This document shows positions 6,501 through 55,646 of a stretch of 55,646 nt of DNA, piece by piece. A model generated the notes under the pieces. It had not been told where the DNA came from. It saw only the letters and a program-made list of their open reading frames with translations, and made no database searches. Every line of letters starts with the position of its first letter. Position 1 is the stretch's first letter. The position numbers and the translations under genes were made by a program. The stretch is from Macrostomum lignano (Eukaryota): contig NIVC01002172.1 in assembly GCA_002269645.1 (NCBI GenBank), positions 1-55,646 of the forward strand, in the 5' to 3' direction.

Positions 6501-9500
6501 AAGTGCTACAAGGCGTGCAAAGCCAGGAAATATCGCTTCTTCGGTGTGCAAAATGGCTACCAGTGCTGGTGCGGCAACCACTATGGCAGGTACAGAATCC
6601 GATCAAACTTGGAGTGCAGAGTACAGTGCAGAGGAGACAAGTCGACCTACTGCGGAGGCGCGTGGAGAAACAATGTCTACGCGACGGGTGTTGTCGTCGC
6701 CAGCAAAGGTAACCGAGTCTGTCAACAGGTTTACGCTTGTAGCTTTCTGGAGATCCAAGCAATCCTAGTGTACTGCTGTTTTTCGTTGCGCCATCTAGCC
6801 ATTTAGCCAGCAGCACTACTAATAGATGTCTCAATGAACAATGGTTTATAGACTAGACTAATCCAAGAGAGGTGGGCGATGCCAGCCGATTGAATCTAGT
6901 TGGAGCGTTTAATATTCGTAGTCGTAACTAAAATGATGCCCTTCTGATCTTCCAGCGGCCGGAGTGAAGTACGTCGGCTGCTTCAAGGACAATCGCTACA
7001 GGGATTTGCCGGTAGTTTACACTGCCAACTACAAGACGACAAAGGCTTACTGCTTCCGCTATTGTCGAGCCAAGGGCTACAGGTACTTTGGTCTGCAAAA
7101 CGGCAATGCGTGCACCTGCGGAAACACCGTCGGTCGGTATGGAAAGCGTCGAGCAAGGATTGCGCCAGGTCCACCTGTAAGGGCGACAAGAGGTCCAAAT
7201 GTGGTGGACCATGGAGGAACAGCGTCTTCACAACCGGACTGAAGCCCAAGAGCTTCAAGAGTAAGTGTGCAGTCAAGCAGAAAATTCGCTTTCCACGCTC
7301 GCTCGTAGGCTCGTACGGTATATTAGATATTTTTGAATGTAAAACGAGATTGCTCTGTACGGTTTGGATGGGGTTTTGCTGACCTGCATGTGCCCACTAT
7401 TTCTCTTTTAAGCACCTGGAATGTCTCACATTGGCTGCTTTGTTGACGGCCGGAGGCGCGATCTTCCAACTGTGGGAGGAAAAGGCAGCATAACTGTTGG
7501 AAGGTGCTACGGACTGTGCAAGAAAAAGGGATTCCGATTCTTTGGCGTTCAGATAGGAAAACAGTGCTGGTGCGGCAACCACTACGGTCGCTACGGCCGA
7601 CGCGACAAACGCGAGTGCCGCTACCAGTGCAGAGGAGACAAGACGACCTACTGTGGCGGCTCCTGGAGAAACGACGTGTACGCTACCGGACTCGAAGAGC
7701 ACGCCTCCGGAGTTACCCTACTTGGCTGCTTCCGCGACAATTCGAAGCGCGACTTGCCCCTTGTACACGGCGCCGGTCACCGGACCACAAAGGCGTACTG
7801 TCTGAAGTACTGCAAGTCTCGCGGCTACAGGTACTTTGGCCTCCAGGCTGGATCTGCGTGCACCTGCGGCAACAAATATGGCAGCTTTGGCCGAGTCAAT
7901 GCAAAGCAGTGCAGAACGCGCTGTAGAGGCGACAAAAGACGAACCTGCGGCGGCTCTTGGAGAAACTCTGTCTACTCGACTGGAATCGGCAGCAAGCCTG
8001 TTCGTCGTGAGTACAACAGTACAGATTCGCAATTGATTGCTTTTTTGTCCACCTAGCTCGTGTTTATATTAGTTTGCAGCTCTCAGTTGAGAACTATGCG
8101 ATGCCTCACTAATTGCGCGCGCCGTTTCTCTTCCTTCCATAAATACGAGTAGTTTCAAGCAATATAAGGTGGCTAATTTGAAATTGTGCGCAAATTAGTC
8201 TGACATCTTGAAACTTTAAATGCATTAAATATCATCAGCGAAAGCGTGGGCGTCCAAGAGTTGAGCCTTTCTCATAAGTTGTTTACATAAACGACAGCAA
8301 ATAATGTGTACAGTAGTAGTCTGTCGCTACCGCTTTCAGTGCCCGGATTGAAGCATCTCGGCTGCTATCTGGACAAGAGCTCCAGAGATCTTAGAAAGCT
8401 GGTTCTCTCCGGATCAGTTACTGTGCCAAAGTGCTACAAGGCGTGCAAAGCCAGGAAATATCGCTTCTTCGGTGTGCAAAATGGCTACCAGTGCTGGTGC
8501 GGCAACCACTATGGCAGGTACAGAATCCGATCAAACTTGGAGTGCAGAGTACAGTGCAGAGGAGACAAGTCGACCTACTGCGGAGGCGCGTGGAGAAACA
8601 ATGTCTACGCGACGGGTGTTGTCGTCGCCAGCAAAGGTAACCGAGTCTGTCAACAGGTTTACGCTTGTAGCTTTCTGGAGATCCAAGCAATCCTAGTGTA
8701 CTGCTGTTTTTCGTTGCGCCATCTAGCCATTTAGCCAGCAGCACTACTAATAGATGTCTCAATGAACAATGGTTTATAGACTAGAATAATCCAAGAGAGG
8801 TGGGCGATGCCAGCCGATTGAATCTAGTTGGAGCGTTTAATATTCGTAGTCGTAACTAAAATGATGCCCTTCTGATCTTCCAGCGGCCGGAGTGAAGTAC
8901 GTCGGCTGCTTTAAGGACAATCGCTACAGGGATTTGCCGGTAGTTTACACTGCCAACTACAAGACGACAAAGGCTTACTGCTTCCGCTATTGTCGAGCCA
9001 AGGGCTACAGGTACTTTGGTCTGCAAAACGGCAATGCGTGCACCTGCGGAAACACCGTCGGTCGGTATGGAAGAGCGTCGAGCAAGGATTGCGCCAGGTC
9101 CACCTGTAAGGGCGACAAGAGGTCCAAATGTGGTGGACCATGGAGGAACAGCGTCTTCACAACCGGACTGAAGCCCAAGAGCTTCAAGAGTAAGTGTGCA
9201 GTCAAGCAGAAAATTCGCTTTCCACGCTCGCTCGTAGGCTCGTACGGTATATTAGATATTTTTGAATGTAAAACGAGATTGCTCTGTACGGTTTGGATGG
9301 GGTTTTGCTGACCTGCATGTGCCCACTATTTCTCTTTTAAGCACCTGGAATGTCTCACATTGGCTGCTTTGTTGACGGCCGGAGGCGCGATCTTCCAACT
9401 GTGGGAGGAAAAGGCAGCATAACTGTTGGAAGGTGCTACGGACTGTGCAAGAAAAAGGGATTCCGATTCTTTGGCGTTCAGATAGGAAAACAGTGCTGGT

Positions 9501-12500
9501 GCGGCAACCACTACGGTCGCTACGGCCGACGCGACAAACGCGAGTGCCGCTACCAGTGCAGAGGAGACAAGACGACCTACTGTGGCGGCTCCTGGAGAAA
9601 CGACGTGTACGCTACCGGACTCGAAGAGCACGCCTCCGGAGTTACCCTACTTGGCTGCTTCCGCGACAATTCGAAGCGCGACTTGCCCCTTGTACACGGC
9701 GCCGGTCACCGGACCACAAAGGCGTACTGTCTGAAGTACTGCAAGTCTCGCGGCTACAGGTACTTTGGCCTCCAGGCTGGATCTGCGTGCACCTGCGGCA
9801 ACAAATATGGCAGCTTTGGCCGAGTCAATGCAAAGCAGTGCAGAACGCGCTGTAGAGGCGACAAAAGACGAACCTGCGGCGGCTCTTGGAGAAACTCTGT
9901 CTACTCGACTGGAATCGGCAGCAAGCCTGTTCGTCGTGAGTACAACAGTACAGATTCGCAATTGATTGCTTTTTTGTCCACCTAGCTCGTGTTTATATTA
10001 GTTTGCAGCTCTCAGTTGAGAACTATGCGATGCCTCACTAATTGCGCGCGCCGTTTCTCTTCCTTCCATAAATACGAGTAGTTTCAAGCAATATAAGGTG
10101 GCTAATTTGAAATTGTGCGCAAATTAGTCTGACATCTTGAAACTTTAAATGCATTAAATATCATCAGCGAAAGCGTGGGCGTCCAAGAGTTGAGCCTTTC
10201 TCATAAGTTGTTTACATAAACGACAGCAAATAATGTGTACAGTAGTAGTCTGTCGCTACCGCTTTCAGTGCCCGGATTGAAGCATCTCGGCTGCTATCTG
10301 GACAAGAGCTCCAGAGATCTTAGAAAGCTGGTTCTCTCCGGATCAGTTACTGTGCCAAAGTGCTACAAGGCGTGCAAAGCCAGGAAATATCGCTTCTTCG
10401 GTGTGCAAAATGGCTACCAGTGCTGGTGCGGCAACCACTATGGCAGGTACAGAATCCGATCAAACTTGGAGTGCAGAGTACAGTGCAGAGGAGACAAGTC
10501 GACCTACTGCGGAGGCGCGTGGAGAAACAATGTCTACGCGACGGGTGTTGTCGTCGCCAGCAAAGGTAACCGAGTCTGTCAACAGGTTTACGCTTGTAGC
10601 TTTCTGGAGATCCAAGCAATCCTAGTGTACTGCTGTTTTTCGTTGCGCCATCTAGCCATTTAGCCAGCAGCACTACTAATAGATGTCTCAATGAACAATG
10701 GTTTATAGACTAGACTAATCCAAGAGAGGTGGGCGATGCCAGCCGATTGAATCTAGTTGGAGCGTTTAATATTCGTAGTCGTAACTAAAATGATGCCCTT
10801 CTGATCTTCCAGCGGCCGGAGTGAAGTACGTCGGCTGCTTCAAGGACAATCGCTACAGGGATTTGCCGGTAGTTTACACTGCCAACTACAAGACGACAAA
10901 GGCTTACTGCTTCCGCTATTGTCGAGCCAAGGGCTACAGGTACTTTGGTCTGCAAAACGGCAATGCGTGCACCTGCGGAAACACCGTCGGTCGGTATGGA
11001 AAAGCGAAGAGCAAGGATTGCGCCAGGTCCACCTGTAAGGGCGACAAGAGGTCCAAATGTGGTGGACCATGGAGGAACAGCGTCTTCACAACCGGACTGA
11101 AGCCCAAGAGCTTCAAGAGTAAGTGTGCAGTCAAGCAGAAAATTCGCTTTCCACGCTCGCTCGTAGGCTCGTACGGTATATTAGATATTTTTGAATGTAA
11201 AACGAGATTGCTCTGTACGGTTTGGATGGGGTTTTGCTGACCTGCATGTGCCCACTATTTCTCTTTTAAGCACCTGGAATGTCTCACATTGGCTGCTTTG
11301 TTGACGGCCGGAGGCGCGATCTTCCAACTGTGGGAGGAAAAGGCAGCATAACTGTTGGAAGGTGCTACGGACTGTGCAAGAAAAAGGGATTCCGATTCTT
11401 TGGCGTTCAGATAGGAAAACAGTGCTGGTGCGGCAACCACTACGGTCGCTACGGCCGACGCGACAAACGCGAGTGCCGCTACCAGTGCAGAGGAGACAAG
11501 ACGACCTACTGTGGCGGCTCCTGGAGAAACGACGTGTACGCTACCGGACTCGAAGAGCACGCCTCCGGAGTTACCCTACTTGGCTGCTTCCGCGACAATT
11601 CGAAGCGCGACTTGCCCCTTGTACACGGCGCCGGTCACCGGACCACAAAGGCGTACTGTCTGAAGTACTGCAAGTCTCGCGGCTACAGGTACTTTGGCCT
11701 CCAGGCTGGATCTGCGTGCACCTGCGGCAACAAATATGGCAGCTTTGGCCGAGTCAATGCAAAGCAGTGCAGAACGCGCTGTAGAGGCGACAAAAGACGA
11801 ACCTGCGGCGGCTCTTGGAGAAACTCTGTCTACTCGACTGGAATCGGCAGCAAGCCTGTTCGTCGTGAGTACAACAGTACAGATTCGCAATTGATTGCTT
11901 TTTTGTCCACCTAGCTCGTGTTTATATTAGTTTGCAGCTCTCAGTTGAGAACTATGCGATGCCTCACTAATTGCGCGCGCCGTTTCTCTTCCTTCCATAA
12001 ATACGAGTAGTTTCAAGCAATATAAGGTGGCTAATTTGAAATTGTGCGCAAATTAGTCTGACATCTTGAAACTTTAAATGCATTAAATATCATCAGCGAA
12101 AGCGTGGGCGTCCAAGAGTTGAGCCTTTCTCATAAGTTGTTTACATAAACGACAGCAAATAATGTGTACAGTAGTAGTCTGTCGCTACCGCTTTCAGTGC
12201 CCGGATTGAAGCATCTCGGCTGCTATCTGGACAAGAGCTCCAGAGATCTTAGAAAGCTGGTTCTCTCCGGATCAGTTACTGTGCCAAAGTGCTACAAGGC
12301 GTGCAAAGCCAGGAAATATCGCTTCTTCGGTGTGCAAAATGGCTACCAGTGCTGGTGCGGCAACCACTATGGCAGGTACAGAATCCGATCAAACTTGGAG
12401 TGCAGAGTACAGTGCAGAGGAGACAAGTCGACCTACTGCGGAGGCGCGTGGAGAAACAATGTCTACGCGACGGGTGTTGTCGTCGCCAGCAAAGGTAACC

Positions 12501-42500: not shown

Positions 42501-45500
42501 TTCAAGCAATATAAGGTGGCTAATTTGAAATTGTGCGCAAATTAGTCTGACATCTTGAAACTTTAAATGCATTAAATATCATCAGCGAAAGCGTGGGCGT
42601 CCAAGAGTTGAGCCTTTCTCATAAGTTGTTTACATAAACGACAGCAAATAATGTGTACAGTAGTAGTCTGTCGCTACCGCTTTCAGTGCCCGGATTGAAG
42701 CATCTCGGCTGCTATCTGGACAAGAGCTCCAGAGATCTTAGAAAGCTGGTTCTCTCCGGATCAGTTACTGTGCCAAAGTGCTACAAGGCGTGCAAAGCCA
42801 GGAAATATCGCTTCTTCGGTGTGCAAAATGGCTACCAGTGCTGGTGCGGCAACCACTATGGCAGGTACAGAATCCGATCAAACTTGGAGTGCAGAGTACA
42901 GTGCAGAGGAGACAAGTCGACCTACTGCGGAGGCGCGTGGAGAAACAATGTCTACGCGACGGGTGTTGTCGTCGCCAGCAAAGGTAACCGAGTCTGTCAA
43001 CAGGTTTACGCTTGTAGCTTTCTGGAGATCCAAGCAATCCTAGTGTACTGCTGTTTTTCGTTGCGCCATCTAGCCATTTAGCCAGCAGCACTACTAATAG
43101 ATGTCTCAATGAACAATGGTTTATAGACTAGACTAATCCAAGAGAGGTGGGCGATGCCAGCCGATTGAATCTAGTTGGAGCGTTTAATATTCGTAGTCGT
43201 AACTAAAATGATGCCCTTCTGATCTTCCAGCGGCCGGAGTGAAGTACGTCGGCTGCTTCAAGGACAATCGCTACAGGGATTTGCCGGTAGTTTACACTGC
43301 CAACTACAAGACGACAAAGGCTTACTGCTTCCGCTATTGTCGAGCCAAGGGCTACAGGTACTTTGGTCTGCAAAACGGCAATGCGTGCACCTGCGGAAAC
43401 ACCGTCGGTCGGTATGGAAAAGCGAAGAGCAAGGATTGCGCCAGGTCCACCTGTAAGGGCGACAAGAGGTCCAAATGTGGTGGACCATGGAGGAACAGCG
43501 TCTTCACAACCGGACTGAAGCCCAAGAGCTTCAAGAGTAAGTGTGCAGTCAAGCAGAAAATTCGCTTTCCACGCTCGCTCGTAGGCTCGTACGGTATATT
43601 AGATATTTTTGAATGTAAAACGAGATTGCTCTGTACGGTTTGGATGGGGTTTTGCTGACCTGCATGTGCCCACTATTTCTCTTTTAAGCACCTGGAATGT
43701 CTCACATTGGCTGCTTTGTTGACGGCCGGAGACGCGATCTTCCAACTCTGGGAGGAAAAGGCAGCATGACTGTTGGAAGGTGCTACGGACTATGCAAGAA
43801 AAAGGGATTCCGATTCTTTGGCGTTCAGATAGGAAAACAGTGCTGGTGCGGCAACCACTACGGTCGCTACGGCCGACGCGACAAACGCGAGTGCCGCTAC
43901 CAGTGCAGAGGAGACAAGACGACCTACTGTGGCGGCTCCTGGAGAAACGACGTGTACGCTACCGGACTCGAAGAGCACGCCTCCGGAGTTACCCTACTTG
44001 GCTGCTTCCGCGACAATTCGAAGCGCGACTTGCCCCTTGTACACGGCGCCGGTCACCGGACCACAAAGGCGTACTGTCTGAAGTACTGCAAGTCTCGCGG
44101 CTACAGGTACTTTGGCCTCCAGGCTGGATCTGCGTGCACCTGCGGCAACAAATATGGCAGCTTTGGCCGAGTCAATGCAAAGCAGTGCAGAACGCGCTGT
44201 AGAGGCGACAAAAGACGAACCTGCGGCGGCTCTTGGAGAAACTCTGTCTACTCGACTGGAATCGGCAGCAAGCCTGTTCGTCGTGAGTACAACAGTACAG
44301 ATTCGCAATTGATTGCTTTTTTGTCCACCTAGCTCGTGTTTATATTAGTTTGCAGCTCTCAGTTGAGAACTATGCGATGCCTCACTAATTGCGCGCGCCG
44401 TTTCTCTTCCTTCCATAAATACGAGTAGTTTCAAGCAATATAAGGTGGCTAATTTGAAATTGTGCGCAAATTAGTCTGACATCTTGAAACTTTAAATGCA
44501 TTAAATATCATCAGCGAAAGCGTGGGCGTCCAAGAGTTGAGCCTTTCTCATAAGTTGTTTACATAAACGACAGCAAATAATGTGTACAGTAGTAGTCTGT
44601 CGCTACCGCTTTCAGTGCCCGGATTGAAGCATCTCGGCTGCTATCTGGACAAGAGCTCCAGAGATCTTAGAAAGCTGGTTCTCTCCGGATCAGTTACTGT
44701 GCCAAAGTGCTACAAGGCGTGCAAAGCCAGGAAATATCGCTTCTTCGGTGTGCAAAATGGCTACCAGTGCTGGTGCGGCAACCACTATGGCAGGTACAGA
44801 ATCCGATCAAACTTGGAGTGCAGAGTACAGTGCAGAGGAGACAAGTCGACCTACTGCGGAGGCGCATGGAGAAACAACGTGTTTACAACTGGATATAATC
44901 CGAAAGCCTCAGGTGGGTCGGTTGTACAGAATTATTCAGGAATATAAAGTAGTTTCAAATGTGCGAATATTGCTTATATTTCAGTGAAAACCTGCCCATC
45001 GGGATCGAAGGCAACGACTGTGAAGCGCCTTGTATGTGGCTGTGCCCCCGCTTCGGGATCTCAGAGGCTTGGTTCTTTGGTGATTGTTGTCGACACAACG
45101 GGCAGCATGAGCAGTGTTTATAAATCTGTCCGCCGTAGCATTTCAAGGATTTTGTCGTCAAACAGGCGGTTCCAGAATTTTGTTGTTTCAAGCTACGGGG
45201 ATCCTTATAAGCGGCACGTCATTCGAACAAAATCCATTTCGAGGGTTCAGCGATTTCTCAACGGGCTTAAAATTAGAGGTGGTGGCGATTGTCCTGAGTA
45301 TTCAATGTCTGCCGTGATTGACGCGGCGAAATTGGCTGATAAAGATTCTGTTTTGCTTCTGTTTACTGATGCATCGGCTAAGGACCGCAGTTTGACGTCT
45401 AGTGCAGCAAAGTTGTTGAAGTCGAAACGAATTCGTTTCATCGCAATCGGCAGCGGTCGTCTTTGTGGCCGCGGTGCTGAGTATGATGTTCTCGCGAAAA

Positions 45501-46282
45501 ATACTGGTGGACTGGTAGCCAAGTTGAACCGTCGAGTTTCCGATAAGGTGACAGTTGAAATGGTATCTCTGTGACTGTACTTTTCCTTTCATTTTACATT
45601 ATAACGTATTCGGATTTTTTAATTTTTAGGTGATGAAACTAATTGAACTAGCAGCTAAAGGGAAAATGAGCTTCAGTGCTTTCCCGAAGAATACTCGCGA
45701 TCTTGCTAATGCTCTGAGAGGAAGTAAGTTTTTAATCCGGGTTTATTGCTTCTACGAGCTATTTCTTATATTTTGTTGCGGCTGACGCTGCTTAATGTTT
45801 CCAAAATTATTTTCAGAATGCCCGTGCCGAACTGTGACGCGTCATATCTGCGCGATGCCACATTCAGGTGAGAGTCTGTAATAGTCTTTATTCGGGTTGT
45901 GCATGTTGAGATTCTATGCTCACGGGTTAATTTATTTTGCGGCTTTAGCGTCAGTGGTAATTAGATTACTTTCCTTTTACTTTAACAGTATGATTTTTGT
46001 TCATTTTTAGCTTCGCTTGGGTGCTTCCTGGACGATCCCAAGTACCCAGACTTCTCGGTTGTTGCTGGCCGGGGCAAGATGACAGTGTGGAAGTGCAACA
46101 ACCTGTGCAAAGCTAAGAAGTTCTCGTATTTCGGTCTAAAGAACGGCTCGAAGTGCAGCTGCGGTGACAACTACGGAAACAGTGGCGGTGCAAAAGAGTC
46201 CAAGTGCAACAAACGCTGCTCTGGAAATTCCAAAGACAAATGCGGCGGCACCGCGACCAATAGCGTCTACAAGGTTGACTAA
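239..46282 (+). CDS. Giant multi-exon WSC-repeat / LCCL / VWA extracellular protein (5' end outside window)
   Basis: Manual splicing gives one phase-consistent chain: WSC exon 239-524; LCCL, VWA and two linker exons twice (1285-2772, 2866-4356); 61 WSC exons (4613-44912); VWA and linkers (44985-45867); terminal WSC exon 46011-46282 ending in TAA. No start codon or signal peptide is in the window. A few copies carry 1-nt deletions. Confidence 0.85.
1285..1613 (+). CDS. LCCL-domain exon, copy 1 (1-nt deletion near 1497)
   Basis: VWGSGIYTADSSLSKAAVHAG matches the LCCL signature. It is 329 nt versus 330 nt in copy 2 (GAGGGTCG vs GAGGGGTCG). Donor AGG T|gtaagt. Confidence 0.8.
1764..2320 (+). CDS. 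VWA-domain exon (hemicentin/VWA7 type), copy 1
   Basis: LIFVIDITGSMG, FGDP, GGGDCPEYAMSG and LLFTDASAKD are hemicentin-1/VWA7-like VWA motifs. Acceptor tttttgcag|, donor AAG|gtaggg. Confidence 0.88.
2424..2772 (+). CDS. Two small post-VWA exons, copy 1 (2424-2516 and 2722-2772)
   Basis: LMEFLRRAVKGRISFSAF-PRSPSALKKALRG (1-nt deletion relative to copy 2) and KCRCRTVRHRRCKRFSS. Canonical splice sites, and homologous exons occur at 45630-45723 and 45817-45867. Confidence 0.7.
2866..3195 (+). CDS. LCCL-domain exon, copy 2 (intact, 330 nt)
   Basis: GCKRVRSTPSSLSSYKSKVGQCFEFRVTGRLRGNVWGSGIYTADSSLSKAAVHAGIVRNG...YKFIGSRSVPSKKPR; phase 1-1. Confidence 0.85.
3347..3903 (+). CDS. VWA-domain exon (hemicentin/VWA7 type), copy 2
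   Basis: Same 557-nt exon as copy 1 with an N-to-I change; DITGSM, GGGDCPE and FTDASAKD motifs. Confidence 0.88.
4007..4356 (+). CDS. Two small post-VWA exons, copy 2 (4007-4100 and 4306-4356)
   Basis: LMEFLRRAVKGRISFSAFPRSPSALKKALRG and KCRCRTVRHRRCKRVSS; phases 0-1 and 1-1 link in frame to the first WSC array exon. Confidence 0.75.
4613..6708 (+). CDS. WSC unit A(long intron)-B-C: exons 4613-4918, 5485-6078, 6412-6708
   Basis: Acceptors ttccag|CGGCC, ttttaag|CACCT and ctttcag|TGCCC; donors AAG A|gtaagt, CGT C|gtgagt and AAA G|gtaacc. Each domain has the 8 WSC cysteines and the G-x-W-R-N-x-V-Y/F end. Confidence 0.9.
6956..12494 (+). CDS. Three A-B-C units (short intron): 6956-7260/7413-8006/8340-8636; 8884-9189/9342-9935/10269-10565; 10813-11118/11271-11864/12198-12494
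   Basis: 1928-1929-bp periodicity in the ORF track. The A copy at 6956 has a 1-nt deletion (GGAAAGCGTCG). Confidence 0.9.
12742..22525 (+). CDS. Alternating A-D and A(long)-B-C units: 12742-13047/13200-13496; 13742-14047/14616-15209/15543-15839; 16087-16392/16545-16841; 17089-17394/17962-18555/18889-19185; 19433-19738/19891-20184; 20431-20735/21303-21896/22229-22525
   Basis: The higher-order period is about 3345-3347 bp (13750 to 17097). D at 19891 lacks one codon (GGW vs GGSW), and A at 20431 has a 1-nt deletion. Confidence 0.88.
22772..28797 (+). CDS. Units 22772-23077/23230-23823/24157-24453 (variant A,B); 24701-25006/25159-25455; 25703-26008/26577-27170/27504-27800; 28048-28353/28506-28797
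   Basis: Same exon types. The last D has a 5-nt deletion near its 3' end. Confidence 0.85.
29030..29325 (+). pseudogene. Degraded A-type WSC exon (multiple small deletions; probable assembly artefact)
   Basis: About 10 nt shorter than A, with a damaged acceptor (cttctgtag) and frameshifts. It jumps at ~29370 from the A-B intron into the C/D-A intron. Confidence 0.6.
29500..35781 (+). CDS. Units 29500-29805/30373-30966/31300-31596; 31843-32148/32301-32597; 32845-33150/33719-~34263 (B truncated); 34560-35151 (B, 5' indels)/35485-35781
   Basis: Same exon types, with a scrambled junction at 34262-34330. Confidence 0.78.
36029..44912 (+). CDS. Units 36029-36334/36487-37080/37414-37710; 37958-38263/38416-39009/39343-39639; 39887-40192/40345-40640; 40888-41193/41762-42353/42687-42983; 43231-43536/43689-44282/44616-44912
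   Basis: Same exon types. D at 40345 has one 1-nt deletion and B at 41762 has two. The last C has a unique tail (NNVFTTGYNPKAS G|gtgggt). Confidence 0.85.
44985..45547 (+). CDS. Second-type VWA exon (hemicentin/VWA7 type)
   Basis: KTCPSGS...LGSLVIVVDTTGSMSS...YGDP...GGGDCPEYSMSA...LLFTDASAKD; acceptor atttcag|TG, donor AAG|gtgaca, the same intron position as in the 5' VWA exons. Confidence 0.9.
45630..45867 (+). CDS. Two small post-VWA exons (45630-45723 and 45817-45867)
   Basis: VMKLIELAAKGKMSFSAFPKNTRDLANALRG and KCPCRTVTRHICAMPHS; same lengths (94 and 51 nt) and phases as the 5' paralogous exons. Confidence 0.82.
46011..46282 (+). CDS. Terminal WSC-domain exon with stop codon
   Basis: tttttag|CT TCG: SLGCFLDDPKYPDFSVVAGRGKMTVWKCNNLCKAKKFSYFGLKNGSKCSCGDNYG...CNKRCSGNSKDKCGGTATNSVYKVD*. 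Confidence 0.88.
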
Positions 46283-46368
46283 TTAAGATTCAATTTAGAC
46301 TTGTCAACTCAAACGTTTAGGTGATGGTACAAAAGACTTGAGCAACTAAAATCACTAGAGATAAATAC

Positions 46369-46374
46369 ATTAAA
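46369..46374 (+). promoter_or_regulatory. Possible polyadenylation signal (ATTAAA) of the WSC gene
   Basis: The variant hexamer lies about 90 nt after the stop in AT-rich sequence; no transcript support is available. Confidence 0.3.
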
Positions 46375-47438
46375 TACAATACAACCGTCTATTACATTAC
46401 TGGTTCCGGTTATTGCTTCGAATTGTTTGAACGCAAAAAGATTTTTTGACTTAACAGTGCGGCCGCAATTTGAAACCCCTCGGAGCCTGATAGCTCGCAG
46501 TCGGGCATTACAACGCCAGTAAAATTAGCTGGCTCTAAACCCGTTTCATACTGGAAATATTTTGATTTTGCTATAAAAATTCAATATTTTGAAACTAGTT
46601 GATATCATGTAGGTCGTCATCAAACTCCTGTGAAACGATCGAAACTGAGTCATGCATGTGCTACACAAGGATGAATTATTAGCCCGTTCCTCGCCCCAAA
46701 TCGTGAGTGAGTTGTTGAGAACTCAGGCTTGCGTTGGGTTGGTCTGAGTCTGCCTTACTGCAGTATAATTCACTTACTGTAGCTGTTTGCACCGGGCTGC
46801 AGCACAGAGTTTTCTCAGAGTGCACTGTGTGCCAAGGCAGTCCAGCGTATGCTTGGACCAGGGACGTTTTAAGTTAGACATCTGGATAGGCGGCGAATCT
46901 GCGATTTGGTCATTGTAGTACAACTATAGGAATTAATAATTACATTTACAGAGCATCCAGATTCATATTATCACTGATTGCGAGCAGTTTATTGAGCATT
47001 TAAATGAGTCAGAAATTCTAAATATCAGATGCAGAGCTGCCAAGTCAATGCAGAACTTAGTAAGGTGCTCACTATTATATTTTAGTGAATTTCTTGCAAT
47101 ACAAATGGGCGAAATTCCGGTGCCGAGAGTAATAGAAAGAATGATGAAGCTCCAGATTCACTCTATTAATACTCCCTGGTTGTGCGGCTGAGTTTGTGCT
47201 TCGGACAAAAAACGATGTAAAAATGCGAAGTCTTGTGTGTACAGAGGGTGCAGAGGGACACAGAGAAGGGGGCGTCAACATGAGGGGTGGAGGCTTGTCA
47301 GAGCCGAGCAGAAAAGCGCGTGACACGAGGGCAAGGCAAAAAGACAGAGGCAACACTTCTTTCGGTTTGTGCAAGTCTCACTGCGCTTCTTTCACTCTTT
47401 CGTTAGCGCATAGCAGCGCTCAGAAGAAACCGAGTTCG

Positions 47439-50400
47439 ATGCCAGGCCGCGCCAGCGCGCTTTTCCTCATCGTGGCCTCCTTGTGGGGGGCCTGCTCTGC
47501 GGCTTCGATTCACGTTGGTAAGCTTCCTCTTCTTCACAAGCTTTCACAGGGATTCATTTTCACACTAAATTCAATGGAATTCACTGGAACTAGTGACTCC
47601 AACTTCAGGTGTTAGCGATCAGCAGAGCGTGCTAGACGAATTTGCGGCTATGAACAGCAGTCAGTTGAGCAGCCTATTTGGAAACAATACCGTGACCTTT
47701 AACCAATCAACGTGCCTTCGGGAAGGACTAGCGCAGATATTACACTTGTGAGAGCTCTAACCAAAAATAATTAAGGTTGCTCATTTTACTCGTCATCTTC
47801 CCTCGCAATTTACCTTTGTTGTTTTGGGGTAGTTCGTGCATTCGTGACACAAGTGAAAGTACGAGCTAAAGACTTTGCTTACTTCAATAAAGGTCGCACA
47901 TTCCTCTTCTTTGATAAAAATATAAATCAGTAGCCATAGCCACAGTGGCCGTAGCTGGTCTTTGTGGTGCAGTACTGACAAAACCGACCCTCTTTCAGTT
48001 GTAAACTCCATCCGAAGCGAGTCATTCAGCCTAGTAATCGGCACCTTCAACGAGTTGCTCGCGTCTGCCTGCTCTTTTCTGACAATCCCATTCTATTCGC
48101 TGAGCGAGAAGACGCTGGACCCGGCGCTAACTTCTTCTAGCTACCTGAGCGACAGCACGACTCTGCTGGCAAATGCTCTGCTGGATGAGCTGATGCTAGC
48201 TTCTGTTAACCTCACGACTCAAGTCGGAAAGCGAGAAACCATCGTCATGCTCGTTGACGATGTTGGAGCAAGTGAGTTTCCCGGGTCCGAACAAATACTC
48301 GTAGCTATGTTGAGCTTCCGCGACAACTAAGAACCAAAGCATTGTACCTCAAGCTAAGTGCAGGGTCTTTTCTACTCACAACTAAAAATCAAAGCATTGT
48401 ACCTCAAGCTAAGTGCAGGGTCTTTTCTACTCACAACTAAAAATCAAATCATTGTACCTCAAGCTAAGTGCAGGGTCTTTTCTACTCACAACTAAAAATC
48501 AAAGCATTGTACCTCAAGCTAAGTGCAGGGTCTTTTCTACTCACAACTAAAAATCAAATCATTGTACCTCAAGCTAAGTACAGGGCCTTTTCTACTCACA
48601 ACTAAAAATCAAAGCATTGTACTTCAAGCTAAGTGCAGGATCTTTTCTACTCACAACTAAAAATCAAAGCATTGTACCTCAAGCTAAGTACCATTTGCTT
48701 CACTGCTCTCAATCTTACCCGCAGGGCTCAACATCCTGTTTGAGAGGAACATCACGCTGGAGTTTCGCATATCTGTGGTGAACTCCAGCAATAGCCCGGA
48801 GATTCGACAGCAGCTGTATGAAACAACTCTGTATTCACCTGTAGATTCCACTGTCTACATGATTGTCTCAAAGCAGCCCGGGTTCGCGTCGAGCATCCTA
48901 AAAGAAGTATGATATAATCTAAGTTAGAAAATAGGCAATTTAAATGTGCATAAAACACAGAACCACTTTTTCACAGACATCCTTTTCTCTCATAGAAAGG
49001 GGTATTAAAATAAACATCTTTAGCCATAAAGCAATAAAATGTTTTTGTTTTTGGCCAAAAAGTTAGGATCAAATGTGAATACAAGCTAAAATCGCGAGTT
49101 TTTCCCTATCCTTTTTGGGAGTTATTGGCGGATATTAGCCAATAAAGGTCTGTTTTGTCTGCTTTTGGGGGGACATAATGTTGAGACTTTTGCATCGGTG
49201 TTCTGCTGCATGAATAATGGCTTCTAAAAACGCACCTATTTTTATATCCTCGAGTCATTAAAAAACTTTGGTTGCGTCAAAATAAGGTCCAAAACTCGTT
49301 TTAACTTGTATACGAGCTATTTGCATAGGAATCCTGTGTGACGAAACGAATGTGTTTCGATGGAATCAAAGTTTTATTGAAAAACAACCTTTGCATCTTC
49401 ATGCAGGCTGTATACCTCAGCATGTTGAAGAGCTCTGCCATCTGGATCGTTCCGGAACTGGTAAAACTGCTCAATTGTATTAATTTTTACTCAGACATGT
49501 TTCGTGTATATATACTTTTTAATGTGCTCCACTGCCTCTATGCTACAGTTTCTTGATCAAAGCGAGATTCTCCCCTTCTATGCCACGGGAGCGAGCATCA
49601 TCACCTTCCGGCTGCCGAACCCTGCAATCACTAATGATGCCCAGCTCAACATGTCCCTGGCTAGTGACGTCATCTCTCACTTCATCGCCAGCTATGAGAA
49701 GAATGTCACTAACGCCACTATTATGGAAAAAATTTTCATGGTACGCTCATCATTTTTTTAAATGCGCGATGCAAAGAAAACCCAGAATCTCTTGTGATCT
49801 ATTTTGATAACGAGTTAGTACCCAAGGACCAATCAATTAGAAAAACACGAAGCTACGGTCTTTGGAAATTTTTAGGAGGCAGGTTTACCGAAAAAAATAC
49901 ATTACGGAGAATGGAGCTTCTTTTTTTGTAAGCAAAAAATGTAAATTTCTTTTGATAGCAGACAAAATTTTCATATTTTGATACGACTTAACTTTCTAAT
50001 AACTCAATTGACATTTGTAGAGCTTTTTGTTTGAAAAATTTGAATTCTATGTTAATTTGATGTTTATGTCCTACCATAAAATTAAATGGAAATAAATTAA
50101 GGTATATCAAAAGTTTAAAATTGGGTCTGCCTTCGACTAAAAGCAATTACAAAATTTTGCTTACAAAATGAGAACTTCCATTCTCCGTACTGTATTTTTC
50201 AGTAAAACCGGCCTCCTAAAAGTTTCCAAGGACCGTAGTTTCCTGTCCTTCTACTTGACTAGTCCCTGTCAGTACCACGATTCAGACTATTGAAGCATCC
50301 CATCACTCTGAGGGAGAATCTGGGAGACTGAAATCGCAGTGACTTTGTCTTCCTGTTGGTTGCCAGCTGCTTCTAAGACACTTCTACCCATCTAGCCATA

Positions 50401-53400
50401 AATGAAAGTCCTGCAGGCCTCAGATGTCAAAATATACTCACCGTTTCGCTTGTTGCTCCGCAGACAACCACCGTCGGATCAGTGTCGATAATGCACTTTA
50501 ACTCGGTGGACAGACGTCTGGACATGTTCGCTGCTGATCTGATGAGCGTGGATTCTGGCTCGGCGACAAATCTGACGCTGGTAATTCGGACACTTAATTT
50601 GCCGGCTGCATTTTCAAACTTTAAATCACAATAATGCTATGCATATGTGAGTGTCTGATTCGGCCAAGCACTGGAAAGTGGGATGTCAACTGCAGTTGGA
50701 ATGGAGCCAGAAGTTTAGCTCTGGACCAAACCGACTGCAATGACCGGACCTAACGTGCCCGACCAGTGCACAGGCTCGCTGGGAATTGAGTTATTGATTG
50801 CAGTCGGTTTGGTCTCGAGCTTTACTTTGTACTGCATTCTAGAGCCTGAAGTTCGACTGAAATCCAAAGGAAGCAATTTGAATGGGGTGTCTCGTTGTTT
50901 CTACCGGTAGTCTTTAGTTGCCAGAGTTAACATTCCCTTTACCGATTACTTCTGTTCTATATTTGAGCTGAAACTGAATCAACTTGTTCTGCTCTGCAGT
51001 ACGCCACGTGGAACGAGTCGGTGTCAAACAGCCTCCAGTCCTCGAGAACGAAGGAAACTCTGAAGTTGCCGGTGCTGCGCCTCGCCGGAGATTTGGTAAG
51101 TGAATTTCGCATTGCTGCAACAATTGAGTTTAAATCAGCTGATTTATTGGTTATTTGCTCAGGTACACTCAATGCCGTAACGTCAGCCTTTTTTTCTCAG
51201 GGCACTTTCATCTTTTAGTATGCTATGAGCACATTAGCTAATATGCGACTTCGACATCGTGTGCCGTAAATTCTAATCAAGTGATGCAACTTGTTCCTCC
51301 CCGTTAGGTAAAGCCTTACCTGATGGGAGTGTCTGGTGGATATTCTGGCTACAGCATTAGTGTGCTGGAGAAGATCAGTAAAGACTTGTTCACTTACGAC
51401 CTAACCAGCTTGAAGCTTGGACCCAACTACTTTGAGTTGGTCCAGAAAGGGGTGAGATGCTGCAGCAAAGTTTTTCGCATTCATTTCTTTAATATTTTGT
51501 CAGAGCCAATAGAATAACTAGATATGTCATTCGCAATAAATGTAGTGTAAAAAAACTGGTGCCCATCATCATGAGCCTCCTACTCTATCCTTCAATTGGG
51601 CGACGAGTGACTGGAAGTTTTTGAGAAACATATCGTCAGCCCCGCCCTACTGGGGGTTACCTCTCATTCCGCCGAAACGCGTTTTGCCGGAAAGGTCATT
51701 TCACAACCCGCGACGGAAAATTATTGCTCTATGGGTGGGACGCAGCTAAGACAGTCGAGAGATGTCTATGATCTAAAGCGAATTCGCACATAAGAGCAGA
51801 AAATCCTGCTGTGCTCGCTTTTAGAGTAGAAGATAAACTCGTAATAACACTGAGAGCACCATGGCTCAAGCAGCTATTATACGAGCTGAGTGTATATCTT
51901 CCATCTATCTACAGTATCGGTCTGATACGCTCGTGGTTAGAAACTATTGACCTTTTCGGCGAAATGCGTTTCGGCAGTACCCCCCTACTGGGGGTTGTGG
52001 GAGCTTCAAAAGCTTTGAATATTCCAAAATTAAAACCATTTATTTCCCTTTTATGGTTAAAAAAGCGACTACATCTTTTTTAGACTGAAAAACATAATCG
52101 GCATTGAAAAAGCCACCCTAGAGAATTGGCAGAAGTGGCGGTTTTCAATGTTGCCGAGTATCAGATGAACGCATTTTTCGGGAGTGACATACCCAGTTAT
52201 TCTAGTATCTGTGGTTTCCATAAGCACAACACTCAGCTCATTCGCTCCGTAAACCTTAGGAAGCAGACATGACAGTTAACCTGGTGGAGCTGACAATAGC
52301 CCATATCAACGACACGCGCGTCTCATTTAGTGAGGTCCCATTGATGAGCAGCGGTGTCGCCGCCATGGGAAGATCGGCCATTAAAGAAGTGGACTTCCTC
52401 AGCCCCTTGTACCCGCTCACATGGAACGTTTGGTTCGCCATTATCGCAGCCTTCATTATCTTGTCGGCCACGCTATACCTGACGGACAAGATCAGCCCGA
52501 ACGACTACAAGCGACCGAAATTCAGCGTTGCCAAGGCGGCCTTTTTTGTTTATTCCTCATTCGTAATGTCGAAGCTGAAGTCCTCGGCAGTGAAGCCAAG
52601 CTCTCGGATTTTCATTCTAATTCTGTGGTTCGCCTCCCTGATGTACTGCACAACGTACGGCACTAATTACTTTTTCCTTCTGATTCGCACCAACCCGAAC
52701 CTACCGTTCACGAACATGCAAGGCCTGTACGATGAGAGAGACAACTACGAACTGCTGATGGTTCAGAACAGCACGGAGTACGCTTTGATGCGAGCGCAGA
52801 ACTCCAGCTCTGTGTACTGGAAATTGGCCGCGTCCCCGCCAACTTTCGTCCCCAGCATCGAAGCGGCTGCCAACATAGTAAAGAACTCGACCCTGCCAGG
52901 TCGGAAGAAGCCGATCTACATCGGCGATGAGCTCTCGGTGAATTATTACGCGGCTGGCGTCTGCGAATTAAAATCCGCCGGCAAGGGGGAGCTCTCCCGG
53001 AGTATGCACATCGTGCTCAGCAGCTCTTTGGACAAGAATCTCATTAGTAACATCAATAACCGCATCCAGGAGCTCAGCGACCGAGGCGAGCTAGAGCAGA
53101 TAAAAAATAAGTAAGTAAATTGATGGATAGTTACAATCAAAGCTGATAGCGTGTCGCTCCCGACCTTCGTAATTGTGCTAAGTTACTACCGGCCTACCGG
53201 CACTTTTGTGACCTGAGCTACAAAATTTTGAACCCATTGATGTTGATAAATGGAGAAGCTTTCGAACCGACACGAATTCAATCGCTCCTTTTCAGTTACT
53301 GGTCCGTGCTGCTCTGCTCAGCTAGTGAGAACCTGATCACCTATTCCGAGCTAACAGAGGTGACAATCGACCAAGTTGCGGGCATCTTCATGGTGCTTGC

Positions 53401-54297
53401 GGGCGCTTTTGTCCTGTCATTCCTCGTAGTAGCAATGGAGTACATTGGCTACATAATCGGGCTTCAGGTTCAGCGAACTGTAAGCTGCCATTACTGAATG
53501 CTTTTTTATTGCTTCATGGCAATTACATTTCTGATTGCTTCCCTCGGATAGTCTTACTACCCACACTACCCAGGGGCTGTAGCCTAGTGGTTAGAGCGTC
53601 GGACTCGCGACTGAAAGGTCTGGGGTTCGATTCTCGATCCCACTTGGAATAATTTGTGTCCTTGAGCAAGACTTTAACTCTTCATTGCTTCAGTTCACCC
53701 AGCTGTAAAATGGGTGCCAGCATTAGCTAGGGTAACTGAGGGTGTGTGGCGACACCCCAGTCCTTGTACTGAACAGCCGTACGCAGCCTTCAGATGCGCC
53801 GCGCAATAGCTGCGGCTGAGCTATCGGTTGCACATCTGCTGATTGGTGCAGGTGTAATCAATTATTGTTATGTCACTACCCATGCTACTTTGTAAGTAGC
53901 ATATTGTGTAAATAGTATGATGTCACAGCAACGTTTTACTCTGGCAGAGAGCCGACCCGGACTTGGAATTCAACAAGGCCTACCGCGCCCTCGTCACCAG
54001 CATCACCCCGACCGGAGTCTACGTGAAGCTGCACGGCGAGAAGATTCATACCGAATCAGATGCTGTCCCCAGATGCGTCCAAGGTGAGGCCTTATGCTCG
54101 CATGCTATATTTGGGCTTGAATCCAAAATTTGCAGACTGCTTACCAACTCTTTAAACAATCACACAATTGCAGGGCATGACAGCCTCGGATCTGCAGATT
54201 TCATGCGGCTCTATTGATCGAGATCACCTACCTGGGCAACGATCCGCCGAAGGCTACCGAATCTTCCACAGGCGTGGCTGAGACACTCGGGCGCTGA
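47439..54297 (+). CDS. Divergent ionotropic glutamate receptor-family subunit (~850 aa, 13 exons)
   Basis: Exons 47439-47517 (signal peptide MPGRASALFLIVASLWGACSA), 47609-47747, 47999-48271, 48725-48906, 49407-49460, 49549-49740, 50464-50580, 51000-51095, 51308-51451, 52260-53110, 53296-53479, 53948-54083 and 54174-54297 (or 54217). It shows S1 (EADM...LTI...VSFS..P), FLSP pre-M1, M1-M2-M3, S2 with a Cys pair and M4 (VAGIFMVL). The exon 2/3 junction and the last two exons need frame corrections. Confidence 0.85.
48336..48690. repeat. 55-bp minisatellite, about 6.4 copies, in iGluR intron 3
   Basis: AAAGCATTGTACCTCAAGCTAAGTGCAGGGTCTTTTCTACTCACAACTAAAAATC starts at 48336, 48391, 48446, 48501, 48556, 48611 and 48666 (partial). 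Confidence 0.95.
49818..50275. mobile_element. Foldback/MITE-like element with ~180-190-bp inverted arms
   Basis: The left arm (CTACGGTCTTTGGAAATTTTTAGGAGGC...TACGGAGAATGGAG...TGTAAGCAAAA) is the reverse complement of the right arm (TTTTGCTTACA...TTCCATTCTCCGTA...GCCTCCTAAAAGTTTCCAAGGACCGTAG). Non-coding and AT-rich. Confidence 0.8.
50685..50857. repeat. Small hairpin/MITE-like inverted repeat
   Basis: Perfect 18-bp inverted pair GACCAAACCGACTGCAAT (50724-50741) / ATTGCAGTCGGTTTGGTC (50797-50814), with degenerate outer arms. Confidence 0.75.
51640..52000. mobile_element. MITE-like inverted-repeat element in iGluR intron
   Basis: 51671-51698 and 51948-51975 are inverted with 25/28 matches, and both ends carry CCCTACTGGGGGTT. 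Confidence 0.6.
52260..53110 (+). CDS. iGluR core exon: end of S1, M1, M2, M3 and most of S2
   Basis: ORF 52269-53114: DFLSPLYPLTWNVWFAIIAAFIILSATLYLTDKISP, SSRIFILILWF, FTNMQGL, NINNRIQELSDRGELEQIKNK; acceptor ccttag|GAA, donor AA|gtaagt. Confidence 0.92.
53573..53873 (+). mobile_element. tRNA-derived CORE-type SINE with 9-bp target-site duplication
   Basis: tRNA-like head with A box TAGCCTAGTGG and B box GGTTCGATTC. TGTGTCCTTGAGCAAGACTTTAAC...TCAGTT...CTGTAAAATGGG resembles the CORE (MIR-type) domain. CACTACCCA flanks both sides (53564-53572, 53874-53882). Confidence 0.85.
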
Positions 54298-54302
54298 ATA
54301 AA
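54297..54302 (+). promoter_or_regulatory. Polyadenylation signal AATAAA overlapping the putative iGluR stop (TGAATAAA)
   Basis: TGA at 54295-54297 is followed directly by ATAAA. Confidence 0.5.
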
Positions 54303-54759
54303 GTTGCTGCTATTGCAAACGGTTGTTGACGTTGAGGACTGAATTGAGGTGCACTTTTAAAACTCATATGATCTCAAATGTAGTATTTATTCAGCAAAAG
54401 TATCATCTTTGATACCTTTGTTACCAATATTTACTGATGATTAAGAGGTACTATCGGTAACAAGTATTTATTAACGCTCATATTAATGCAAAACTGGTCA
54501 ATAAAATATTCTTCACTATATATCATGCTACTATGCCAATATATTATAAAAACAGGCTGTTCGTATGAACTTTCCATGCGGTGAATCCGCTATGCCGGAT
54601 AGAGTATGCACAAATGAATTTGAGTTGTATAAACAGAGCGTTCACTGCACTAGATTCAAGTCGAACGGTTAGTGGATGCCGTACTTAAAGCTATGAGCAT
54701 ATGCCAACGGCCCCGAAATACTTCGTACGGCTCGTATTTTGCCTTTAAAGCTCTCTTCG

Positions 54760-54915
54760 CAGTGTTGGGCACTTCCGTTACCGAGTAACTTGTAAATGGT
54801 AACGCAAGTTACTTTTTCGTAAAGCGTTCCTTACGCAAGTTACTTTCCTATTTTGGTAACGGAGTAACGGTAAGTTACTCAAATTTCGGAAGTCCGTTAC
54901 AGTTACTTTGCAACA
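54760..54915. mobile_element. Truncated non-autonomous DNA transposon end (hAT-like)
   Basis: Starts CAGTGTTGGG, followed by many GTAAC/GTTAC subterminal motifs in both orientations. No matching right end was seen. Confidence 0.5.
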
Positions 54916-55190
54916 ATCGCAATATTTAAATTTAAAACTGATATGCTTAGCTATTACTCCAGTTGTCACATTTTTAGCATTTTTCATTCCTAAATTCAAA
55001 ACTAAGTGAATAATATCATACGGTATTACGCTGTAATTAATAAAGAAATACTTGAAACATGTTTTTACTTTGTTATTTTCGGTAAAATATTTTTGCTTTT
55101 CGTTTTTAAGTTAATAAAAATATTTTGTTTAGTTCTTAGAAACAAACAACCAAAGAAAGAAATTCATCTGTAGTCTCCACAAATCCACTC

Positions 55191-55474
55191 AGTGATCGAC
55201 GTAGCCAGGAATTTTAATTGGGGGGGGGGGCGGGTTGGCCTGGCTGGCCATGCCTCATGCCATTGCCACTTTTAGCGCCGCAGGCACTCATTTAAGCGCC
55301 GCAAGCACTCATTTAAGCGCCGCAGGCACTCATTTAAGCGCCGCAGGCACTCAATCGCCTCATGGTTTTTGGTACCCGCCACGCCCAACCCCACCCCCCA
55401 GGTGGGGTGTCTTGCAGGTGGGGTGAAGTTGCCGCCCAACGATTGTTAAGGCGGCCTCCCTGGCTACACCACTA
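55191..55474. mobile_element. MITE with GTAGCCAGG/CCTGGCTAC terminal inverted repeats and an internal 21-bp tandem repeat
   Basis: GTAGCCAGG at 55201-55209 and CCTGGCTAC at 55459-55467, a poly-G tract, and TTTAAGCGCCGCAGGCACTCA x4 at ~55270-55353. Confidence 0.65.
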
Positions 55475-55646
55475 AAGTCCACTGGCACTGCACTGCACTG
55501 CACAATAATTTAATATTATGATAAATTGAAAATAAATAAAAAGACTAGTAAAGCAGACTATAGAGTGGAGTAAAGCCAGGTACTTATTACGAGCGATGTA
55601 TTATCAAGGACAACTGAAGTTACGTTAAGTTGTCCTTGTGTATTAT

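Follow-up and report, generated by a model that had tools for sequence, protein, structure and literature searches.

A PNPT1-type S1 domain in the C-terminal tail of a glutamate-receptor-family channel from the flatworm Macrostomum lignano

Introduction

In ionotropic glutamate receptors (iGluRs), the segment after M4 is cytoplasmic and the C-terminal tails carry trafficking and scaffold motifs. Fusion of a channel to a globular cytosolic module is known from TRPM6/7 and from TRPM2, whose C-terminal NUDT9-homology domain became an intracellular ligand sensor. Here we describe BOX15_Mlig012789g3, a gene for an iGluR-like channel (Pfam Lig_chan) on a Macrostomum lignano contig of 55,646 nt (assembly GCA_002269645.1, Mlig_3_7), the whole of which was analysed and is called the window below. 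The last two coding exons of this gene specify an S1/OB-fold domain, about 75 residues long, that begins about 10 residues past M4 and whose specific homologue is the S1 domain of animal PNPT1.

An S1/OB-fold module on the tail of an iGluR-family channel had been proposed in an initial annotation of the window, and it is borne out by intact reading frames in sister contigs, a Pfam S1 match in a paralogue, a profile match to PNPT1, a barrel predicted by AlphaFold, signs of selection and recurrence of the architecture in other proteins. The same annotation knew of no described iGluR-S1 fusion. Full-text literature searches for the fusion and for the gene ids likewise gave nothing relevant and no account of an iGluR with an S1- or PNPase-derived tail, and the fusion appears to be undescribed; the proteins themselves have public database entries, labelled as hypothetical or given a wrong name.

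Results

The tail is an S1 domain of PNPT1 type

A phmmer search of 177,635 PDB sequences with the tail corrected in the manner of the initial annotation placed the human PNPT1 S1 domain (residues 631-698) first at E = 0.005, reproducing the 13/24 identities quoted in that annotation. A profile of three tails found PNPT1 at 6e-7 and nothing else below 0.01, and a profile of ten channel tails, built without any PNPase, matched human PNPT1 625-707 at E 2.5e-15, with Rrp5 (1e-3), ribosomal protein S1 (0.09) and bacterial PNPases (0.2 or worse) as the next PDB matches. Identities at 13 of 24 positions with E 0.005, together with the ten-tail profile value, indicate that the resemblance to PNPT1 is more than chance.

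Matching to Pfam S1 (PF00575, gathering threshold 22 bits) gave a divided answer. The tail of the Mlig026429 paralogue alone reaches 24.6 bits, which with the PNPT1 profile supports the annotated S1 identity, but the intact tail of the window gene stays below the threshold at 16.4 bits; 7/12 family tails match the model at E <= 0.1. No match was returned by a Pfam scan of the window's raw or annotation-corrected tail, and a word-index search with the corrected tail found nothing. That failure is attributable to wrongly corrected residues near the indels and to the shortness of the tail. A query of channel body plus tail worked: a homology search with the channel exons and the tail returned P0002, an M. 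lignano protein with 51% identity, and P0001, which comes from a Logan assembly and is 82% identical.

Structure prediction agreed with the proposed fold. AlphaFold2, supplied with the intact tail and an alignment of 12 sequences, gave a model with a predicted local distance difference test score (pLDDT) of 85.3 and a predicted template modelling score (pTM) of 0.70, arranged as b1-b2-b3-short helix-b4-b5 (strands at residues 14-22, 26-31, 34-39, 63-71 and 78-82, helix at 40-43). The model is a confident prediction of a five-stranded antiparallel OB/S1 barrel in which the helix separates strands 3 and 4. The top Foldseek matches of the model in the PDB were all S1 domains (probability 1.00, template modelling score 0.6-0.69), among them those of ribosomal S1, eIF2-alpha, Rpb7, Tex, DHX8, RNase II and PNPase, with human PNPase showing the highest identity at 33%.

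The S1 coding sequence is also constrained. Between the window gene and a 1,369-nt transcript contig of a related species (L001, Logan SRR28338165), the ratio of non-synonymous to synonymous substitution rates (dN/dS) is 0.051 in S1 exon A and 0.085 in the channel body, and the former value indicates purifying selection on the S1 exon.

The protein body is that of a divergent glutamate-receptor-family channel

The intact product of BOX15_Mlig012789g3 has 852 amino acids and comprises a signal peptide, a region resembling an amino-terminal domain (ATD), putative ligand-binding lobes, M1-M3, M4 and the S1 tail. By its sequence, the Mlig012789 protein is a divergent channel of iGluR or ionotropic receptor (IR) type. 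Pfam Lig_chan (PF00060, cut-off 30.8 bits) matches the window exons at 62.3 bits and the public model P0007 at 58.8 bits; SBP_bac_3 scores 19.6-22.1 bits (cut-off 26.4), and Lig_chan-Glu_bd (cut-off 30) is passed by the relatives P0032 (38.8 bits) and P0043 (33.4 bits). The nearest named relative outside flatworms in a profile search was insect IR8a (E 1.4e-5, 23% identity), and the public UniRef label of the Mlig012789 proteins is 'PBPe domain-containing'. The M3 segment is YCTTYGTNYFFLLI (LMYCTTYGTNYFFLLI), in which only Y and N are retained of SYTANLAAF, the iGluR M3 gate motif. Variant IRs deviate at this motif too, and the mismatch therefore marks a divergent member of the family rather than a reason for exclusion from it.

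Frameshifts in the window are assembly errors

The features of the gene, in window coordinates, are these:

47439..54281, + strand: coding sequence of BOX15_Mlig012789g3, start codon (MPGRASALF) at 47439; public models P0006-P0013
47702..47742, + strand: two 1-nt assembly deletions in an N-terminal exon (at 47702 and 47742), window against sister contig L008
52260..53110, + strand: large exon running from the end of putative ligand-binding lobe 1 through M1, the pore loop and M3 to lobe 2; open frame
53296..53479, + strand: M4 exon (..VAGIFMVLAGAFVLSFLVVAMEYIGYIIGLQVQRT), phase-0 end at 53479 (..GLQVQRT, then GTAAGC)
53480..53947, + strand: intron from the M4 exon to S1 exon A, GT..AG borders; absent from transcript contig L001
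53948..54083, + strand: S1 exon A, linker and strands beta1-beta3; true reading RADPDLEFNKAYRALVTSITPTGVYVKLHGEKEFIPNQMLSPDASK; window without 2 nt at 54042-54044
54084..54173, + strand: phase-0 intron within the S1 domain, GTGAGG..GCAG borders
54174..54281, + strand: S1 exon B, strands beta4-beta5; true reading GMTASDLQISCGSMIEITYLGNDPAEGYRIFHRRG; stop TGA at 54279-54281
54297..54302, + strand: AATAAA polyadenylation signal, 15 nt past the true stop

Within the large exon, identity to the paralogue is 53%, in frame and without gaps, and its donor (AA followed by GTAAGT) was deduced from the protein sequence IKNNYWSV.

Translation of the three forward frames of 53,000-55,646 reproduced every reading frame quoted in the initial annotation. 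After the AG at 53946-53947, exon 53948-54083 reads RADPDLEFNKAYRALVTSITPTGVYVKLHGEK; a shift within the exon gives (F)IPNQMLSPDASK, i.e. FIPNQMLSPDASK, as far as the donor after 54083 (GTGAGG), and the exon from 54174 reads GMTASDLQISCGS, then LIEITYLGNDP in the +1 frame. What the annotation made of these frames needs amending. It had invoked two frame corrections, and comparison with sister contigs calls for three: two 1-nt deletions at 54042-54044 (GAG to A), a surplus T inserted at 54214 and a C missing after 54245, the latter two in exon B. It had also found no last S1 strand and had let the protein end in PPKATESSTGVAETLGR with a TGA overlapping AATAAA. That is not the coding frame; past NDP, frame 0 resumes with AEGYRIFHRRG and the TGA at 54279-54281, and this stretch is the last S1 strand, with GERLFRR in the paralogue and GRMRLSRK in PNPT1 as its counterparts.

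The intact tail is encoded by a sister contig (...GEKEFIPNQMLSPDASKGMTASDLQISCGSMIEITYLGNDPAEGYRIFHRRG, then stop), and its end, ...KLHGEKEFIPNQMLSPDASKGMTASDLQISCGSMIEITYLGNDPAEGYRIFHRRG, is common to the gene copies g1 and g2 and to five older gene models. The intact protein finishes in ...YLGNDPAEGYRIFHRRG, and over the indel stretches the intact form reads GAGAAGGAGTTC, TCTATGATC and GATCCCGCC.

The model deposited for the window contig, PAA60268.1 (P0006, BOX15_Mlig012789g3), has 692 amino acids. Its C-terminus (...KLHGEKIHTESDAVPRCVQGHDSLGSADFMRLY) is the literal product of both proposed junctions with the frame left uncorrected, which identifies it as the window's gene, and it starts with MLASVNL rather than with MPGRAS as in the 852-residue P0010 because of the deletions at 47702 and 47742. 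Assembly indels have thus shortened this public model at both ends. A further copy, BOX15_Mlig012789g4, was found by profile search, and PAA60268.1 sits in its 90% cluster.

Were the frameshifts genuine in g3, the locus would be a decaying allele or paralogue whose protein ends in half an S1 domain. The deposited annotation follows exactly that reading, the three indels are packed into 200 nt, and duplicated loci are numerous in M. lignano. However, over 10.3 kb (window 45,348-55,646) the g2 contig (L008) shows no substitution but 11 one-base indels relative to the window, 9 of which are deletions in the window, mostly within short homopolymers, and 4 of which fall inside the S1 exons (54042, 54044, 54214 and 54243 in this alignment). 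Such a pattern, against a sister contig with an intact tail, identifies the frameshifts as assembly errors. The N-terminal exon is broken by two further indels of the same kind. The g4 contig (L003) represents a different haplotype, with 26-31 single-nucleotide polymorphisms (SNPs) in upstream blocks relative to the window; its first and third S1 sites are intact and its second, at 54214, carries an error of its own, a -1 change (TCT-TGATC, where g2 has TCTATGATC and the window TCTATTGATC), while the site is intact in both g1 and g2. Conservation also continues past the break: of the differences from the related-species transcript L001 in the 13 codons beyond the window's first frameshift, 7 are synonymous and 1 is non-synonymous when read in the S1 frame. 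Elsewhere in the window, the 1,929-bp repeat units of a tandem array encoding WSC domains, otherwise identical, likewise differ by indels only, one cluster amounting to 7 indels in 360 nt; because single-base indels are the main difference between copies, copy number and frames of this array are unreliable in the present assembly. We consider genuine decay of g3 highly improbable, and a pseudogene or decaying-copy reading is rejected on the sister-contig comparison (0 SNPs, 11 indels). The window's frameshifts are, as judged from these alignments, single-base consensus errors of a redundant contig.

The S1 exons are spliced to the channel

Both junctions proposed in the initial annotation (53479 to 53948 and 54083 to 54174) are used in PAA60268.1, and the first is also spliced in L001, which matches window blocks 52260-53113, 53297-53477 and 53964-54085 with the introns between them gone. 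Splicing of the M4 exon to S1 exon A in this transcript contig confirms the M4-to-S1 junction, and excludes the possibility, raised together with the original proposal, that transcripts end or splice elsewhere after M4. The second junction rests on M. lignano gene models, as L001 runs through the last donor; the contig was rejected as support for this junction for the same reason. At the paralogue locus L002, an intron occupies the position equal to that of window intron 54084-54173.

At positions 1205-1369, L001 reads through the last donor (AAG followed by GTAGAG) and meets a stop three codons on, either as unspliced pre-mRNA or as a genuine short isoform carrying half of the S1 domain.

The Lig_chan plus S1 architecture recurs in other proteins

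An exhaustive search of 1.84 billion representatives with the tail profile gave 30 matches at E <= 1e-3. The combination of Lig_chan with an S1 tail, for which the initial annotation had suggested looking in other proteomes, is a feature of three gene families in M. lignano and also occurs in a tapeworm, Schistocephalus solidus, and several unnamed assemblies. Lig_chan proteins with the C-terminal tail matched in a single stretch are P0018 (M. lignano A0A1I8HFD1), P0021, P0032 and P0043, to which several fragments of M4 plus tail can be added. The paralogue Mlig026429 is full length at 867 amino acids, with the same three-exon layout and an intact tail. In the S. solidus entries (P0021 and P0047; A0A0X3NVQ4 and A0A0X3PEC1), Lig_chan and the tail stand in one sequence and Pfam finds Lig_chan alone; their UniProt name, 'Polyribonucleotide nucleotidyltransferase 1', is an annotation error that arises from similarity of the S1 tail. 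P0032 and P0043 come from Logan assemblies, each as a single uninterrupted open reading frame (ORF) on its contig. The source of P0032 (L004, Logan ERR14224705, ORF 255-2828) is a Tara Pacific coral long-read metagenome and encodes a full-length Lig_chan protein with S1 tail, and the family may extend beyond named flatworms. The nearest non-channel matches of the profile are true PNPases, namely a spider protein and P0029, in which RNase_PH and PNPase domains are present. Profile matches made up of several stretches (P0017, P0019 and others, E to 1e-26) were rejected as WD40 repeat proteins in which weak FSPDG-like matches had been summed.

A gene-model artefact, in which a stray PNPT1 fragment or pseudogene was wrongly joined to an adjacent receptor, would account for the PNPT1 name of the S. 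solidus entries and for the unspliced last intron in L001. It is contradicted by the spliced M4-to-S1 junction in that same contig, by the single ORF that runs from Lig_chan through the tail in Logan contigs L004 and L005 and in the S. solidus transcripts, by two 51%-identical paralogues with a common exon structure, by selection that acts in frame, and by the lack of RNase PH and KH domains anywhere in these proteins. Continuous ORFs in transcript contigs and the missing PNPase domains also exclude the separate PNPT1 fragment that the initial annotation had named as a possible refutation, and we give an artefact almost no credence. The comparisons across loci and species instead establish, at the level of sequence, a fusion that is old, under purifying selection and present in several paralogous M. 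lignano channels and a cestode.

Intron positions are compatible with capture from PNPT1

Pfam found no RNase_PH, PNPase or KH domain in P0003, P0007, P0018 or P0021 but did report such domains in the genuine PNPase P0029; the channel proteins are hence not PNPases, and what they share with PNPases is the S1 module alone. Two phase-0 introns delimit and divide this module in M. lignano. A spider PNPT1-like gene has phase-0 introns one and two codons from the M. lignano positions, together with an extra phase-2 intron. These positions are compatible with, and not proof of, an exon-level capture, by which the S1 module would have been taken over from the PNPT1 gene.

The S1 surface suggests a membrane-proximal binding module

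The iGluR topology places the post-M4 segment, and with it the S1 domain, inside the cell, which fits the basic linkers found next to M4 in every member (QRTR, RRRSRNK, RCRRRD and others). The barrel would hang about 10-15 residues beneath the membrane, in four copies per tetramer and directly under the pore domain, where it could act as a membrane-proximal binding module. The conserved nucleic-acid contacts of S1 domains are two aromatics on beta2, a His on beta3, and Asp and Arg on beta5. On the predicted barrel, the second beta2 aromatic position is W, Y or F in 8/10 channel tails and Met or Lys in PNPases, and beta5 of the channel tails has a near-invariant Asp followed by Arg or Lys. The likeliest ligand of the surface formed by the beta2 aromatic and the beta5 Asp-Arg would be single-stranded RNA or another polyanion, the binding of which would either attach RNA or ribonucleoproteins (RNPs) to the receptor or place trafficking or gating under the influence of an intracellular ligand.

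We tentatively favour such a ligand-binding role, in which the likeliest ligand would be single-stranded RNA or some other polyanion. RNA binding by the S1 tail is plausible from its residues; that the tail is a working RNA or oligonucleotide site, through which receptors would anchor RNAs or RNPs at a synaptic or sensory membrane or RNA would gate or modulate them from inside, we regard as rather unlikely. The main competing account accepts the S1 fold and holds that nucleic-acid binding was lost, leaving a protein-protein or assembly/trafficking module such as a cytoplasmic ring beneath the tetramer or a docking site for partners. Many OB folds serve as protein-interaction modules. In keeping with this account, the tails have lost the equivalents of Phe19 and His34 (E. 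coli PNPase numbering), two of the classical S1 RNA-contact residues; the parent PNPT1 S1 already departs from the canonical S1 surface; and several members score weakly on Pfam S1. Against a pure protein module stand the aromatic residue, absent from PNPases, at the beta2 stacking position of most channel tails, the retained beta5 Asp/Arg and the strongly basic linker after M4. Loss of nucleic-acid binding is a real possibility that we would stop short of calling probable.

Other features of the contig

Two receptor introns contain repeats. At about 53565-53640, within intron 53480-53947, lies a tRNA-like repeat with A- and B-box-like motifs (GGGGCTGTAGCCTAGTGGTTAGAGCG...GGTTCGATTC), the same sequence being present in the g4 haplotype contig. 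It drew no call from either ARAGORN or Rfam and is probably a tRNA-derived short interspersed nuclear element (SINE). At 48323-48691, some 6-7 tandem copies of a 55-bp repeat appear as a ladder of near-identical 45-residue ORFs. In the g4 contig L003, an insertion of about 3.6 kb (6991-10591) interrupts a receptor intron at the point corresponding to window 51153; the window and the g2 contig are without it, and it is possibly a transposon polymorphism.

Upstream of the receptor, the large tandem array of 1,929-bp units, one of which spans 7412-9340, occupies 4474-44877 and also 44984-45574. It comprises shorter variants and at least 14 full copies, which are 99.4-100% identical. A pair of WSC (carbohydrate-binding) domains is encoded per unit, an exon for a VWA domain follows the array, and sister contigs annotate the receptor's neighbour as a WSC plus VWA protein. 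Near the contig end, at 55210-55470, a G-run and four copies of a repeat of about 22 bp (CATTTAAGCGCCGCAGGCACT) are followed by C-runs in inverted arrangement, possibly the end of a mobile element; the homopolymers here also bear assembly indels.

Discussion

We hold with good confidence that an S1 tail on a glutamate-receptor-family channel, together with its proposed capture and membrane-proximal binding role, is as a whole the best explanation of this locus. Several observations weigh against it. The window gene's own tail falls short of the Pfam S1 threshold. The first beta2 aromatic and the beta3 His are not conserved in the tails, and PNPT1 S1 is itself without the beta2 aromatic. L001, the only transcript contig of the closest orthologue, is unspliced at its last intron and would break off halfway through the domain. 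The introns match those of PNPT1 only to within 1-2 codons, in a comparison with a spider rather than a flatworm gene. Finally, the carriers from named taxa are M. lignano and S. solidus, most other relatives from Logan or ENA being without taxon assignment.

A folded domain of nucleic-acid-binding type directly under an iGluR pore is an unexpected architecture, and its conservation under purifying selection spans macrostomid flatworms and a tapeworm. Should the domain bind RNA, a channel of neurotransmitter or chemosensory type would thereby be connected to RNA localisation or to the sensing of an intracellular ligand, and a working RNA site would amount to direct coupling of receptor and RNA, analogous to the captured NUDT9 domain of TRPM2; to our knowledge, such coupling has been described for no iGluR. 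M. lignano is tractable to transgenesis, which makes the idea testable.

Among known systems, TRPM2 offers the likeness of a cation channel with a cytosolic C-terminal globular domain copied from a soluble (mitochondrial) enzyme of nucleotide or RNA metabolism. It belongs to another channel superfamily and drew on another donor fold, and its likeness to the flatworm channel is one of functional analogy only. With the S1 domain of animal PNPT1 (PDB 9kjr, 9kjt, 9njb), the tail aligns over the whole domain of about 80 residues and has in common the motifs LEF..Y.A.V, GV.VKL and Y(F/L)G.DP..G, the same OB barrel (predicted for the tail) and near-identical intron positions of the same phase. In contrast to PNPT1, however, the channel proteins lack the KH domain and both RNase PH domains, a beta2 aromatic has arisen in the channel tails where PNPT1 has Met or Lys, and an S1 domain that is mitochondrial in PNPT1 is joined in the flatworm to a membrane channel, on its cytosolic side. 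With iGluRs and variant IRs, the flatworm channel has in common the signal peptide, the ATD-like region, a putative bilobed ligand-binding region, the layout of M1, pore loop, M3 and M4, and a Lig_chan match above threshold; it differs in its high divergence (23% identity to IR8a) and degenerate M3. The architectures also part behind M4, for the known iGluR C-terminal tails are short or disordered and carry peptide motifs, whereas the flatworm tail is predicted to be a folded S1 domain.

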